From assembly GCA_033442325.1 (NCBI GenBank), contig JAWQFM010000004.1:1182406-1246405 (forward strand): 64,000 nucleotides of DNA. The letters run 5' to 3'. The position numbers were made by a program, and so were the translations under genes. How positions within the stretch are numbered: position 1 is the stretch's first letter; each line of letters begins with the position of its first letter. The stretch comes from Salpingoeca rosetta. Taxonomy: Eukaryota; Protista; Choanoflagellata. A model generated the notes under the pieces. That model saw only the letters and a list, made by a program, of their open reading frames with translations, had not been told where the DNA came from and ran no database searches. Positions 33,641 through 40,276 of this stretch are shown here, piece by piece.

Positions 33641-33960
33641 TTGGTGACCAGTGGGTTGTTTATTGTGTGCGCGGGCGCAACCTCCTCCTCCTCCTCCTCC
33701 TCCTCCATCACCACCACCTCCTCTCTCCCTCTCTCTCTCTTCTCTCTCTCTTCTCTCTCTCTGCTCTCTCTCTTCTCTCACTCTGTCTCCTGGGGGCCTA
33801 ATTGATCAGCGTAACAACAACGTCATTGACACAAATCACACCACGCACAAACGCACACAAAAACAATCAAACACACCACACATTTGAAACACACGACACA
33901 CACGAAACACACGACACAAACAACACAAGCGACACAAGCGACAGACGACCACCACGGCGC

Positions 33961-35293
33961 CTATGCGTCTGCTCTGTGCTCGTCCAGGAGGCGGAGCGCC
34001 ACGTCCAGGCCAACCTTGAGGTCTTGCTCCAACTGCGTCAGCTCGGCGTCACTGAACCGCCGATTCAACACCTGCCGCTTCCACACTGCAAACGCCGCGT
34101 TCGCCTTTGGCCGGCACTCCGTCAGCAGCCGTCGCACAAGTGGTTTGGCTGCGTTGGGCCGCAGCGCAAGCGCATGGTGCACGGGCATGCGCTTTGCCCG
34201 CACCTGTTTCTTCTCGCCCGTCACGGCCACGGCCACGCTGCACACGTCCCGCAGCTGCGCCTGGTCCGCCTCGCTCATGTGCTCCGCAATCGACGGCTCC
34301 CGGTCAATAAACCGCAGGTCCCGCTGCAGCGTGCTCTTGAACGTCTCATATGCGCGCGTGAGCAGCACCACCCCTGGCGCGCGGTCGCCAAAGCGCAGCA
34401 GGCCAAACAGCGCCGCCTCAAACGACAGCACGTAGGCGAGATACGGCCCCTGCGGCTCGCCCTTCAGCAGCGACGACGCAAACACGTGCAGGTCCTGCTC
34501 CCGTGTTGTTCGCGGCCGCGCGCGGTACGGCGGGTCCTTGTTTGGAAGGTGCAGCAGCTTCGTCGCGTCCAGGCACACGTGGTACATGTACTGGGTGCAC
34601 ATGTGGTTGAGGATGAGCTGCTGCTGGAGCGACTCGAGTTCCCCCAGCAGCGAGGGCAGGTCCAGGCGTGCATCCGCGTGCTCGCCACCGCCACCACCCT
34701 CCTCCCCGTCCAGATCCTCCAGCGTCACGGCCATCGCCGCCCGGAACGTCACCTCCCACGATGTGAGCGAGGCCGACCGCGGCGTGAGCAGGTCAAACGC
34801 AGACGCGTGCGCGCCGAGTGCAGCAACAGCGGCGGGCCGGAACCGGGCATGTGCACGCACGCGCTTGCGGGTGAGAATCTCATACACGAGGAGAGAGAAG
34901 GCATAAGCCTGCGCCTGTGAGCTGGCGTTGTCTGGTTTGGCGTCGCACTCTGGCGGCAAGTAGAGCAAGCGGTCGCTTGATGTCTCGCGCGTCACGCCAG
35001 ACAGGCGCCGGCTAAAGTCTGCACAGTGTGAACAGAGGATGGAGATGGAGTCGCGGGGGTTGAGACGCGGGAGAGGGGGGTTGTGAGAACGAGCATGGCG
35101 AAGCAGTAACAGGATGACACTGCAAAAGGAAAGGCGTGTGTGTGTGGCTGACGGGCAAGCAGGGAGGCCAACAGGCAGCCGTAAACGCTCAAAGACCAGA
35201 CGGGACAGACACAATTACGTTCAAACACACACATGACGCGCGCACACACACACACACATGACGCACACACACATGACGTACGCATGCACACAT

Positions 35294-35330
<37 letters not shown>

Positions 35331-37372
35331 ACGCACCGAAATCGAAGAGCATCCCCTTGAGCTTGTTGCCTGAGGAGGGCATGAAGCGAATGTGCTTGTG
35401 GTAAATGCACGGCAGGCGCATTGCCTTGTCCTCACACCACTGCAGCGCCTGGCCCACATCAAGCATCGCCGTGTACAGCTGCTCCTGGGCCGTGGTGGCG
35501 TTGGTGAGCGCGTCGCGGAACGGCGTGTACGACGGCACGGCCGCAATGTATGCAAAGCGGCCCGCCACCCGGTCCACAAAGTAGTAGCGCGCCACGCGCC
35601 GGTGCCTGTTGGCGACGAGCAGGTCAAGGTCCTTCAGGGCGCGCTTGGCAACGCGCGACGTCAGGTTTGGGCTGATGGGGCACTCCACCAGCACGACCAG
35701 GGCGTGCTTGGCAAGTGCAATGCTCCCATCCGCCTTCTCCTGCCTCCATGACCCCCTGAACACACGCGCAAACCGCTCGTCTGCCAGGTTTGGCTGCGCC
35801 GTGGTCTCGTCCACCTCGTAAGCAATCCCCCCACCCGCCGCACTGCTGCTGCCGCCAGTCCTCTTCGCCGCTCCTGCGCTTAACGACGACGACGACGACG
35901 ACGACAATGACGACGCAGCACCGGCCAGCTTGGCGCGCTTGGCAGGCTGCTCGTCGGAGCCCGACACAAGGAGGTGGTCCTCCAGGGACTGCTTGTCCTC
36001 AGGCACATCATCGCACGGGTTGCCCGATTTCTCAAGCAGCGGGCTGCCTTCCTGGAAACAGTACCACTTGCCAGACTGCACAGTTTGCACGTACTCACGC
36101 GGCAGGCACCGCCACTTGTTGCACGAGTCGCACTGAATCCAGTCGACGACCTCGTGCTCTGACAGCTCGCTGTGCGATATCTTCTTGTACGCCCTGGTCT
36201 CGCGGGCCTGGTCATACTCCACAAACACGTCGTGCAGCCGCAGCAGCAGCCGCTGGTACATGTGGTTGTTGTGGAACTCCTGCTTGTTGTCGTGCGGCAC
36301 AAAGTGCTTCTTGGGCAGCTCTGCCAGCAGGATCACGCCAAGGCCCTGGTGCGGCGACGTGATGTGGGCCGCCTGTCGCAGAAACGAGCAGATGAGGCAG
36401 TTGGCCGAGTACAGCATGATGCCACCGAGCTTCTTGCGCTTGTACATCTCCGAGAACCCGATGCTGATGCGAATAACGTCTTCATCGTCGTCCTTAACGG
36501 CGAGCGGTTTCATGTCGTCCACTTCTTCCTCCTTCTTCACCAGCGCCTTTGCAGCGTCCGCCCCATAGTCTTCTTCGTCTTCTTCTTCTTCCTTCTTGGG
36601 CCTCGCCTTCAGGATGGGCTTCATCTTCACATCCGTGCGCCCCTCCTCCTCCTCCTCCTCCTCCTCCTCCTCCTCCTCCTCCTCCTCTTTCTTCATCTTC
36701 ATCTTCATCTTGGGGTTCGGTTCCTCCTTGACTTCAGACTTCACTCCCCTCTTCACCCTATCCAACATCCCCTCATCATCCTCCTCTTCCTTCAACTCCT
36801 CCTCCTCCTCCTTGATCTCCTTCTTCACAATCGCGCCACCACCACTGCCCCCGCTGCCGTTGGCTGCGCCCGGTCTGCGCTTTGGCTTGAGCGCCTTCAC
36901 CTTGAGTTCGCTCACCTGCACATCAGACAGGTCCTGCTCCAAACTCCGCCGCTCCACCAGCTTATCGTGCAGAAACACGCGCAGGTCAATGCCGTGCGGG
37001 TGCTGGCGGGAGGGCGGGCGCGTCTGCAGTGTGCGGTACATGATGGCCACGTATTTGCGCAGGGAGTAGTCCATCTCAATGTCGTCTGCCAGCACACCGT
37101 CCTTCACTTTGCGCTGGTAGTGCTGCCGGTTCCCGTCGAGGTCCTCCTGCCAGATGCGGAAGTCGTCCGGCACACTCGTCATGTCGAGCTCGGGCCTGCA
37201 GCGGGGGATGGGTGCGCATGGATGAGAGGGAGAGAGAGAGAGAGCTTGTGCGTGTGTGTGTGTGTGTGTCTGTGCGTGTCTGTGTGTGTCTGTGTGTGTG
37301 TGTGTGTGTGTGCGTGTGTCTGTGCGTGTGTCTGTGTGTGTGTCTGTATGTGTGTGTCTGTATGTGTGTGTC

Positions 37373-37404
<32 letters not shown>

Positions 37405-39200
37405 GTGAAGCTCGACACAGGTGAAGTACACGTGTACAACATTTGCCCCGCCCCCCTTTTTCCTGCCTCAAGAAAACTGACTGCATGTAACCGTAGGAGT
37501 CTTCCTTCTTGACGAGGTCGCTGATGAGGATGGTGGTGCCGCTGGTCTGGTTCTCGTGCATCCAGCGCCCCACAAACAGCTGGTTGATCACCTTCGTTCG
37601 CTCCATGATGCGCTGCAGTACAGAGTCAAACTCCTGCTGGTTCTCTGCTCCCAGAACCCAGAGGGGAGGAAGCAAACATGACATATGGAGGTGAGTAGGT
37701 CGTGATGGTGGTGATAATGATGATGATGAGGCGGGATCATGACAGAGCACAGACACAATACTGCATTGCATTTGATTCCTACACCCACGCGTTCTCGCGC
37801 ACACGCACACGCAGACACGCACGCACACACACACACGCACACACACACACACCTGCAGACACACACACACACGCAGAGACACACACCTGCGTCGGCGTGT
37901 CCGCCTGACCCGATGTTGAGCTTGGTTGTTTCGCACATGATGTCGTCTTCGCCAGTGGGGCCGCGACGAGAGAGAACACCAATACAGACGCTGTTGTGCT
38001 GTATGGAGCGGGTCAGCACGACAGCGTGGTGTCCAATGCGCATGGAGCCCGTCTTGAAGCCATACCCGAACCGCCCACTGCGATGGGTGTCGCTCACGTC
38101 CTGCAGGCACAGGGGCACAAGCACATGTGACCCGTGAGGTTCGTTGGAGAGGAGAGAGGAAGAGAAGATTGGGCACGCCAATCGCAGTGGCACGCGAACG
38201 CACACTCGAGCGCACACAAAACAACCCGCAAACAAAATGCATGCACAAACACAAATACACACACGCACACATACACACGCACGCACGCACGCCGCTCACA
38301 CGCACACGCACACGCACACGCACACGCACACGCACACGCACACGCACACGCACACGCACACGCACACGCACACGCACACGCACACGCACACGCACACGCA
38401 CACGCACACGCACACGCACACGCACACGCACACGCACAAGCACATACCTGTTTGCGGCCCAGCTGCATCATGGTATCAATCTCTTCCTTTGACATGCCCA
38501 CGCCGTCATCCCTGAGCTCAATGAGCGTCTCGCCGCCCATGGTCTTTGGCCGGATGCGGACATTGCGCGCATCTGCGTCGCTCGAGTTGTGAATCAGCTC
38601 TGCAAAGGCGCCAAAGATCCACTCGTGTCGCGCGTAGGCTTCCTTGAGCAGGAACGTGGGTGGCAGCGAGAGGCGGCCCTGCACGTGCAGGCCCTTTGGG
38701 CTGTCGACTGGGGTGCTGGTTGGCGTTGACGATGTGGAGGAGCTTGTGCGCTGCCGGTGGTGGCGGTCGTGGAGTTTGAGTCGCAGGTGGCTGGTGTCTG
38801 CGCGTTGCAGTGGGGCGCCGTCGCGGTAGTAGATGCGGAAGCGGCCCATTTGCTTCGGCGTGGCCACAAAGTATATGCTCGGGTTCTGTGTGTCTGACAG
38901 GATTTCACCCGCCTTTTCGTTCCCCCTGTGATTGAGGCACTTCCACAGCCTGAGCACCTTTCCTTGGCGATCCTCGTCCTCAAAGGACACGTCCAGCGGC
39001 TGCGTGCCTTCGAGGGCCTGGCTGACTGTGTGAATGCGAGGAGAAACGCCACCGCCCGCGCGCTTCACCTTCAGCAGGAGCACGCCCTGTGTTGGCCAAC
39101 CAGGCGGCAGGATGCTTCGGTCCATCTTGCACTCGCTGATGAAGGCTGGCCCGGTGGGTTCGTCTTGAAACAGCTTGAAGGTGATGGTGTCCCCGCTCAT
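33961..39200 (-). CDS. MORC: MORC-family GHKL ATPase with S5 domain, CW zinc finger and C-terminal protein-kinase-like (pseudokinase) domain (about 5 exons)
   Basis: [75 protein letters not shown]; CW finger [14 protein letters not shown]...WYC...CDDVPE; kinase-like segment at about 34700-35800. Approximate exons 39200-38448, 38101-37886, about 37650-37482, 37196-35337, 35018-33961. Confidence 0.9.
38297..38437 (+). repeat. (GCACAC)n hexamer microsatellite in MORC intron 1
   Basis: More than 20 perfect copies; reads (GTGTGC)n on the sense strand just after the donor. Confidence 0.95.
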
Positions 39201-39616
39201 GGTTGGTAGTTGGCGGTTGGTTGCATGCAGAGAGAGGGAGGGTAGTCGTTGCTGTCGAAAGCGACTGCTGGACTGCTGGCTTGCGACGTCGACTAGCCAA
39301 TGGAGCAACGAGCACTTTGCCTCTTTGCAGGCGCTGAACACAAGCAGAGAGGGGGACGGAATGCCAGCTCCCCTCTTTCCTTGGCCAAAATCAAACGGTG
39401 TACGCGTGCACCCACGATGATGTCCGCAAGCGAGCACAACAACAGCCAAAGCAGCCAACAACAGCCAAAGCAAGGCGAGTGACGCAGGCGTGGTGGTCTT
39501 CTTCGTCGTGTTGTTTGTGGTGTGGTGGCGGCGCCTCAAACAAAATAAAAAATTGTGTGAATGTGTGCCGCCAAATTCAAATTGTTGTTTGCTTGCTCGT
39601 TGTTCAAGTTGTGGAG

Positions 39617-39643
39617 TTGTTGTTGTTCTTGTTGTTGTTGTTC

Positions 39644-39726
<83 letters not shown>
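39617..39726 (+). repeat. (GTT)n microsatellite upstream of MORC
   Basis: Direct observation. Confidence 0.95.
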
Positions 39727-40276
39727 CGTGGTGGTGGCGACGGTGGGTGGTGGCGATTGCGGCAGAAGGGTGAAGGCATGAGGCCGTGATGATGTTTATT
39801 ACGTAGATTGTTGTGCTGTTGGTGTGCGAGTTATTTATTAAAGTTGGTGAGGTCAGGTACATGACATTCAGTTGTCATGTTGGCGGAGTTCGTTCTTTGT
39901 TACATTTTGTTGATGGTCTTTCGTTCGGTTGTTGTTCCTCGTCGCTATCGCCGTCATCATCATCATGGACATCACCATACACGCCCTTGCTCCCAGTCTT
40001 TCCCTTCGTCCTTTTTTCTTTCTTCTTCTTCGTAGCTTCGTCTTTCTTTCTTTCCTTCTTCTCCCCCCCCCCTTTTTCCTTTCCTTCTTGGCTCTGTTGA
40101 CAGTGCGACAACCTGCTGCCCCTTGCTGAAGCTTTCGTTGTTGATCCCGCCTTCACGCGTTCGCGTGCGTACAACGATGAAAGCGCAGGACCAAAAGCCG
40201 CATCAGTCGCACGAGTGAAAAGGGGAGTTGTGATGAGGTGCTGTGAGTTTGATTGTTTCAATCCTAAAATGCACAG

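Follow-up and report, generated by a model that had tools for sequence, protein, structure and literature searches.

The DNA examined here, referred to below as the window, is a stretch of 64,000 nucleotides of the Salpingoeca rosetta assembly GCA_033442325.1 (contig JAWQFM010000004.1, positions 1,182,406 to 1,246,405 of the forward strand). Coordinates are positions within the window. On its minus strand we identified a gene for a MORC-type ATPase in which the CW-type zinc finger is followed by a kinase-like domain and a helical tail. According to our model of the exons and their translation, the coding region (33961..39200) consists of five exons (39200-38448, 38100-37887, 37644-37482, 37195-35337 and 35018-33961), ends with a TAG stop codon at 33963-33961 and specifies a product of 1,348 amino acids. 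All parts of this gene described below are on the minus strand. From its N terminus, the protein comprises a conserved region without an assigned family, a GHKL ATPase domain, a MORC S5 domain with a low-complexity insert, the CW finger, a Ser/Ala-rich linker, the kinase-like domain and the tail. As judged by sequence comparison, this architecture is real, conserved and previously unannotated. The window's own annotated product was not found in the protein collections searched.

Gene structure and transcript evidence

Every junction of the gene model has GT-AG borders, the reading frame is open throughout, and all four junctions are free of gaps when aligned to intron-less orthologue transcripts. 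A single exon without a stop codon (exon 4, 37195-35337) encodes the CW finger together with the kinase-like domain's first half. The second half is encoded by exon 5, beyond intron 4 (35019..35336), a microsatellite-rich GT-AG intron of 318 nt in phase 1. This intron splits the codon of D997 (G|AC), which belongs to the motif equivalent to the kinase DFG. An initial annotation of the window had described a change from DFG to DFD across a phase-1 intron, and this is what we found. A Tara Oceans scaffold from a relative (L004) has an intron at the same position.

Reads and contigs from four public runs were placed on window positions 33700-37196. In assembled RNA contigs of two separate studies (X4 record 1; X5 record 8), the segment from 36562 to 35337 is followed immediately by that from 35018 to 33790. 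Because these contigs join 35337 to 35018, the exon for the S5 domain, CW finger and kinase N-lobe and the last exon are on the same RNA, and because they skip 35336-35019 exactly, the 318-nt intron is removed as predicted. The initial annotation had pointed to this junction as a place to look for RNA, and had also raised the possibility of transcripts that end ahead of the kinase region; coverage does not stop there. In two stranded raw-read RNA-seq runs (X19 and X20), exons 4 and 5 are covered on a single strand only and the intron bin 35104-35220 has a depth of zero. The 37482/37195 junction was confirmed by a read loose end at 37195 that runs on into the reverse complement of the exon 3 donor. 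Since the reads were placed on 33700-37196, beside a (GT)n repeat, the exon 1-2 and exon 2-3 junctions were taken from the orthologue alignment only.

The genome is GC-rich, with introns full of (GT)n/(CA)n microsatellites. Long repeats of this kind are present in all introns of the gene (38297-38438, 37230-37400 and 35282-35336). A segment of ~20 nt at 35241-35261, which adjoins the intronic CA/TG repeats, has very high read and contig depth and many loose ends, most likely because repeat-derived reads from elsewhere in the genome map to it, and not because the intron is expressed. Upstream of the chosen ATG the frame stays open for ~190 codons (39201-39779, minus strand), through a long poly-Thr run. 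We treat this segment as 5′ untranslated region (UTR) because the orthologues begin at the equivalent of 39200.

A MORC3/4-type ATPase

Three Pfam families were found above their cut-offs (25 bits for HATPase_c_3, 26.2 for Morc6_S5 and 27.5 for zf-CW), in agreement with the MORC identity given in the initial annotation. The GHKL (Bergerat-fold) ATPase domain (amino acids 176-376; 37484..38675, exons 1-3) matches HATPase_c_3 with an E-value of 9.5e-11 and 42.3 bits. Directly after it, the S5 domain (amino acids 377-715; 36181..37483) matches Morc6_S5 with an E-value of 4.1e-14 and 53.2 bits. The CW-type zinc finger (amino acids 725-775; 36001..36153) matches zf-CW with an E-value of 4.8e-09 and 36.5 bits. 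A CW finger is a feature of a subset of these proteins, namely animal MORC1-4 and some plant MORCs.

Alignment of exon 1 with human MORC2 revealed that motif I, with its Glu and Asn, and the G1 box are kept (DDGVGM versus DDGAGM in MORC2); motif I of the window aligns to the MORC2 sequence AELVDNARDADA. A further ATPase motif of 11 residues was found in exon 2. The match of exon 4 is to the ATPase-CW cassettes of MORC3 and MORC4 (E-value 2.6e-13), with NKQEF opposite NKQDF of MORC3. Its CW finger, which also contains KWYC, aligns with WVQCDACLKWRKLP...KWYC of MORC3, and the Cys ligands and both tryptophans are kept. By these comparisons the protein is a true MORC of the MORC3/4 type, and its ATPase looks functional by its motifs.

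Homology of the kinase-like domain

The kinase-like domain has ~240 amino acids in total. Its first part (amino acids 846-997; 35337..35790) covers the N-lobe, alphaE and the catalytic loop up to DF(D), and has profile matches to ULK3 and Aurora. The second part (amino acids 997-1085; 34753..35018) covers the activation segment, a PPE motif equivalent to APE (with E1020), alphaF and the following helices. The kinase remnant motifs listed in the initial annotation are all present on the minus strand in the frame and order given there, including one motif with H908 and one with C973 and H978.

The kinase homology was detected with profiles of the protein family. Profile A1 was built from the C-terminal modules of the orthologues, with the window's two exon pieces as rows. 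Searched against the PDB, it matched 420 chains at E-values ≤1, and those listed were all protein kinases, with ULK3 (2.2e-10) as the best match and Aurora A at ~1e-7. The alignment is in register from beta3 through the catalytic loop, DFG and APE to alphaF. Profile A3 contained only the window, the Microstomoeca roanoka protein and the Tara relative, leaving out the environmental protein P0004, the most canonical member of the family. It also matched kinases exclusively (129 chains; ULK3 at 6e-6). In Pfam, P0004 and a second environmental protein, P0008, score with Pkinase (E-value 6e-7). The P0004 match has an E-value of 5.9e-7, extends over positions 43-252 of 263 and reaches 29.6 bits, just below the gathering threshold of 31.7. 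The Tara scaffold L004 matches PK_Tyr_Ser-Thr with 12.8 bits only (E-value 0.075), and no Pfam kinase family was found for positions 680-1180 of the M. roanoka protein (P0001) at E-values ≤10. A BLASTP comparison links the window's N-lobe piece to P0004 with an E-value of 3e-5. In a language-model search of the ESM Atlas, both halves of the domain fell independently among Pkinase clusters (0.96 for the first and 0.93 for the second half), which we regard as a lead only. Kinase homology is thus established by sequence statistics: the match anticipated in the initial annotation is obtained with the family profile, which matches kinases only, and the window by itself has no Pfam kinase match at E-values ≤10 in this region.

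A phmmer search with the N-lobe piece also returned an unexplained match of 37 residues (35731-35623; residues 26-62 of 35338-35808, minus strand) to PDB chain 8g9j_A, 'THR1', with an E-value of 8.5e-4.

The initial annotation had called the fold TK/TKL-like, that is, of the tyrosine kinase or tyrosine kinase-like groups. We did not retain this label, because the best matches are Ser/Thr kinases and the catalytic loop that would tell the groups apart has been destroyed. ULK3 and Aurora A, B and C lead the profile matches, and P0004 matches Pkinase and not PK_Tyr_Ser-Thr. Only two results point towards TK/TKL, a marginal match to B-Raf (E-value 0.056) and the PK_Tyr_Ser-Thr score of L004.

Catalytic residues

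Residue positions were mapped through the ULK3 alignments of profiles A1 and A3. The position of the beta3 Lys (of VAIK) is occupied by E881 (VVLVECP), and a Glu stands there in all four orthologues. The position of the HRD Asp is occupied by C973, so that neither residue is present, as the initial annotation had read. At the catalytic-loop Lys and Asn positions we found Y975 and H978, and the alphaF Asp is lost. No Gly occupies any of the loop positions of GxGxxG. The lone Gly of this region, G858 (in FARVFRGSW, amino acids 852-860), falls in beta2, an assignment made partly by extending the ULK3 register upstream. The degenerate glycine loop of the initial annotation therefore stands as far as the loss of the loop glycines is concerned, but the Gly of RGS is probably part of beta2 and not at a loop position.

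Three other residues are kept. The DFG Asp is D995, within DFD (LFDFDFSRR); the equivalent motif reads DFE in P0001, CDF at the end of the exon in L004 and CFE in P0004. The APE Glu is E1020 (LYLPPE), and an acidic residue, D899, stands at the alphaC Glu position. The Cys, His and Asp at three former active-site positions (C973, H978 and D995) are identical in the window, P0001 and L004, and are replaced by Val, Thr and Cys in P0004. The conserved set may reflect drift or may mark a re-purposed site.

A pseudokinase is usually defined as a kinase homologue that lacks at least one of the beta3 Lys, the HRD Asp and the DFG Asp. Two of these three canonical residues (beta3 Lys and HRD Asp) are lost, and the kinase-like domain is therefore, by its sequence, a pseudokinase under this operational definition. 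The stronger wording of the initial annotation, which had considered the domain catalytically dead, agrees with the loss of the beta3 Lys, HRD Asp, catalytic Asn and glycine loop. It goes too far in one respect, as the DFG Asp is retained and the site is thus not stripped of every catalytic residue.

Orthologues and conservation of the architecture

The exon 5 product was searched exhaustively with HMMER against 1.84 billion representatives, and only three proteins matched: an ankyrin protein, a fragment of the tail, and P0001. P0001 is a complete transcript open reading frame (ORF) of 1,180 amino acids from M. roanoka with the same architecture. The nearest orthologue is from a choanoflagellate. 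The ankyrin/STAND protein (P0002, E-value 1e-10) was rejected as spurious, as the match involves 43 residues only and is repeated eight times in its ankyrin array. Searching from P0001 led to two environmental proteins that share the architecture, P0004 (1,160 amino acids) and P0008 (1,216 amino acids). The Tara Oceans scaffold L004 encodes the S5 domain, the CW finger and an N-lobe ending in ...CDF, followed by the intron and then the last exon, and so has the same exon structure as the window. At least three other taxa therefore share the conserved architecture.

The collections searched contain few members of the family. A metagenome scan for further members matched 131 patterns, none of which was confirmed. 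Monosiga and non-choanoflagellate holozoans did not turn up in the collections searched, which is no proof of absence.

The ATPase, S5 and CW domains are 53-58% identical to those of the M. roanoka protein, as against 35-37% for the kinase-like domain and tail. The whole C-terminal module of ~500 amino acids is conserved end to end, including the intron position. Judged by these values, it is evolving faster than the MORC part yet is constrained over its full length. Within the genome the module has no paralogue, and the next-best genomic kinase matches it with an E-value of 0.003.

The C-terminal tail

The tail (amino acids 1086-1348; 33964..34752) is specific to the family and conserved in every orthologue, among them P0001, P0004/P0008 and P0007/P0003; the tail piece of the window matches P0004 with an E-value of 7e-6. 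The initial annotation had noted about 250 amino acids of helical sequence after the kinase region. We found ~260, mostly helical as described, and they match nothing: the tail has no Pfam family and no ESM Atlas match, and its profile has no PDB match at E-values ≤10. When a model of the tail was compared with ~48,000 PDB representatives (VIA-align), the best Z score was 3.0, which is not meaningful. Prediction of a complex of two tail copies gave a score of 0.00, with the fold of the partner itself uncertain, and thus bears on self-association in neither direction. Kinase-like domain and tail together fill the ~500 amino acids after the linker, and no helix in their low-confidence AlphaFold2 (AF2) models is longer than ~28 residues. 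A tail with a KEN/HEPN ribonuclease domain was considered and rejected, given the lack of a PDB match at E-values ≤10, a best fold Z of 3.0 without a KEN entry, and the lack of a conserved Rx4-6H motif in the family alignment (A4).

Other parts of the protein and neighbouring sequence

The N-terminal region (amino acids 1-175; 38676..39200) is conserved in the orthologues, with 46% identity to M. roanoka P0001, and is present in P0006 and P0008. No credible Pfam family was found for it; the only matches were P33MONOX (E-value 0.018) and ATR1_N (E-value 0.15), neither of which comes near its cut-off. Besides the tail, it is the second module of this MORC-pseudokinase family without an assignment.

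A Glu/Lys-rich low-complexity insert (amino acids 476-615; 36900-36481) lies inside the S5 domain. It is lineage-specific and missing from all the orthologues. The RNA contigs break within it, at 36563-36722, probably because of GAG repeats. The Ser/Ala-rich linker between the CW finger and the kinase-like domain (amino acids 776-845; 35791..36000) is also of low complexity and is poorly conserved, with 18.5% identity to the environmental orthologue.

Two RNA variants with low support were detected, one in the 3′ UTR (A>C at 33906) and one in codon 410 (C>G at 37098). In the repeat-rich part of the 3′ UTR (33851-33910), RNA reads contain a 60-nt joint that goes back on itself. The variants and the joint suggest strain or allele differences. 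The next downstream open frame (33576-32953, minus strand) has 207 amino acids, is rich in Gln, Lys and Ser, begins with MTAKRNKRLWG and possibly represents the beginning of another, adjacent gene.

The only MORC detected in the genome

We scanned the genome assembly (55.4 Mb in 68 contigs) exon by exon for the MORC domains. Only one Morc6_S5 locus was found, the gene described here. The other HATPase_c_3 matches were two Hsp90 paralogues and a MutL homologue, and at the sensitivity of an exon-by-exon scan this gene is therefore the only MORC of the organism. The Hsp90 paralogues are single long open frames of 766 and 880 amino acids (L005, G000:C3:52500-57000, and L006, G000:C11:450000-455000, respectively); L006 also weakly matches SACS and KIND.

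Interpretation and alternatives

On balance we think it probable that this locus encodes an expressed, single-copy MORC3/4-type ATPase whose pseudokinase and tail serve as a non-catalytic interaction unit. The architectural part of this statement, taken alone, is very likely to be correct. That the unit acts in dimerisation or as a scaffold is more tentative, and we put the chance of this at somewhat under even. Pseudokinase domains often act as non-catalytic interaction modules. By analogy with established MORCs, the GHKL-S5 module would dimerise on ATP and clamp DNA, and the CW finger would direct or gate the clamp via histone H3 tails. The pseudokinase and tail could then form a protein-protein interaction unit at the place of the constitutive C-terminal dimerisation domain, where they might hold two protomers together, dock a regulator such as an active kinase, or both. 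In other MORC-type ATPases, what joins the protomers is a coiled coil at the C terminus (MORC1-4) or an SMC hinge (SMCHD1 and GMI1), and a C-terminal coiled coil is common in MORCs without being a defining feature (PMC5651269). There is also precedent for the swapping of C-terminal modules among these ATPases (PMC5651269).

Several observations weigh against this reading. The window's two kinase-like pieces matched no Pfam kinase family at E-values ≤10, and the window sequence alone gave only marginal matches in the PDB, the B-Raf match mentioned above being confined to the stretch after DFD. AF2 modelling of the C-terminal module of M. roanoka from a five-row alignment gave a mean predicted local distance difference test (pLDDT) score of 37, and although the order of its secondary-structure elements is compatible with a kinase, the model is unusable. 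With AF2 models of such low confidence, the evidence for the kinase fold comes from the statistics of the sequence profiles. The model of the window's tail has a mean pLDDT of 51, with values of 70-86 reached in the last ~70 residues (34173-33964), which form four short helices. In X19, exon 5 has two to three times the RNA depth of exon 4. This is probably 3′ bias, and a shorter 3′ transcript may also explain it. Lastly, the DFG Asp and the alphaC acidic residue are kept, three of the four orthologues have the conserved Cys973, His978 and Asp995, and the domain may accordingly bind a nucleotide or metal or have a non-canonical activity.

These last residues bear on whether the kinase-like domain is still an enzyme, or a metal or nucleotide switch that uses D995 together with C973 and H978. 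D995, D899 and E1020 are all retained, the Cys/His/Asp set is identical in the window, P0001 and L004, and the invariance of the Glu at the beta3 Lys position in four orthologues looks like selection and not free drift. Several proteins first classed as pseudokinases have been found to bind nucleotide or to catalyse other reactions. However, the domain has kept neither the glycine loop nor the beta3 Lys, the HRD Asp or the catalytic Asn, and the Val, Thr and Cys of P0004, the most divergent orthologue, indicate that the Cys/His/Asp set is not a requirement across the family. The AF2 model is of no use for judging the geometry of the site. We consider retained catalysis or switching of this kind unlikely.

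In plants and animals, MORCs contribute to antiviral defence and to the silencing of transposons (PMC5651269; preprint 10.64898/2026.09.30.754977), and the C-terminal module evolves faster than the rest of the protein. Both points would suit a defence architecture, as opposed to a housekeeping one, in which the pseudokinase is a sensor or decoy that couples MORC silencing of foreign DNA to the detection of infection. It would do so by imitating a kinase that viruses or other parasites attack, or through recognition by an immune kinase acting upstream of it. However, the gene is single-copy, with no expansion or diversification of paralogues within the genome. As the only MORC detected, it fits more readily with a core role in chromatin than with an accessory one in immunity, and the pseudokinase does not resemble any particular host kinase, as indicated by the next-best genomic match. 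We therefore regard a sensor or decoy function as rather improbable.

A bolder version combines the two ideas. Here Cys973, His978, Asp995 and the Glu at the beta3 position would form a new ligand, metal or substrate site in a re-purposed kinase domain, and the organism's only detected MORC would sense a small molecule or a foreign (viral) protein and switch on chromatin compaction. If true, the closest living relatives of animals would possess a silencing machine coupled to a sensor, but we rate this, too, as rather improbable.

A spurious kinase similarity or an artefact of the gene model (two neighbouring genes joined, or a decaying C-terminal extension without function) would be in keeping with the missing Pfam match of the window alone, the low AF2 confidence and the sub-threshold Pkinase score of P0004, but this explanation is already largely refuted and now highly improbable, given that the CW finger and the kinase N-lobe share one exon, that exons 4 and 5 are spliced together in RNA contigs of two studies, that complete single ORFs with the same domain order exist in M. 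roanoka and in an environmental transcript, and that the profile matches are in register and exclusively to kinases in a module conserved over its whole length.

Comparison with known systems

An expressed MORC with a pseudokinase-tail unit, the reading that we favour, can be compared with four groups of proteins. Animal MORC3 and MORC4 have the GHKL ATPase, S5 and CW domains in the same order and include the best solved relatives (5ix1 and 7k7t, E-value ~1e-13). They share motif I, the G1 box, NKQ(D/E)F and the CW tryptophans with the window's protein, and the best database match outside the family is a MORC3-like protein of a fish. Where MORC3 and MORC4 have a coiled coil after the CW finger, the window's protein has the pseudokinase and tail. 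It also has the additional conserved N-terminal region of ~175 amino acids and the acidic insert in S5.

SMCHD1 and the plant protein GMI1 are likewise GHKL-S5 ATPases in which the C-terminal dimerisation module has been exchanged for an unrelated domain (PMC5651269). In their case this domain is an SMC hinge of known dimerisation function, whereas in the window it is derived from a kinase and its proposed role is an inferred one.

The kinase-like domains of RNase L and IRE1 mediate dimerisation. As in the window, these domains are directly followed by a helical C-terminal extension, and a few ESM Atlas neighbours of the exon 5 product are in clusters that carry Ribonuc_2-5A. In contrast to RNase L and IRE1, the tail in the window has no KEN/HEPN support, and the fold search lists neither of the two proteins.

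The closest parallel for a fusion with a kinase is in plants, where Tiamat-like GHL ATPases, members of the GHL/GHKL superfamily that are linked to defence, are fused to a cyclin-dependent kinase (CDK) (preprint 10.64898/2026.09.30.754977). These proteins belong to a different GHL clade and are not MORCs. Their kinase is N-terminal and is described as a complete CDK, which is presumably active, and they occur in plants and not in holozoans.

The initial annotation had put this fusion forward as a candidate new architecture, and we found no MORC fused to a protein kinase or pseudokinase domain described in the literature searched (full text). The architecture figure of the founding comparative paper includes the SMC hinge, HTH, BAM, TAM/MBD and uncharacterised domains, with no mention of a protein kinase (PMC2292703). 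As the pseudokinase escapes Pfam-based annotation, surveys of holozoan kinomes and domain architectures have probably missed it.

MORC ATPases are central to the silencing of transposons and viral DNA in animals and plants, and the C-terminal control of their dimerisation and targeting is poorly understood. A natural variant with a pseudokinase and an orphan domain at the place of the coiled coil offers a direct way to probe the contribution of the C-terminal module, and this protein is apparently the sole MORC of a genetically tractable organism of the choanoflagellate type. It also adds a chromatin enzyme to the proteins that have recruited dead kinase domains.

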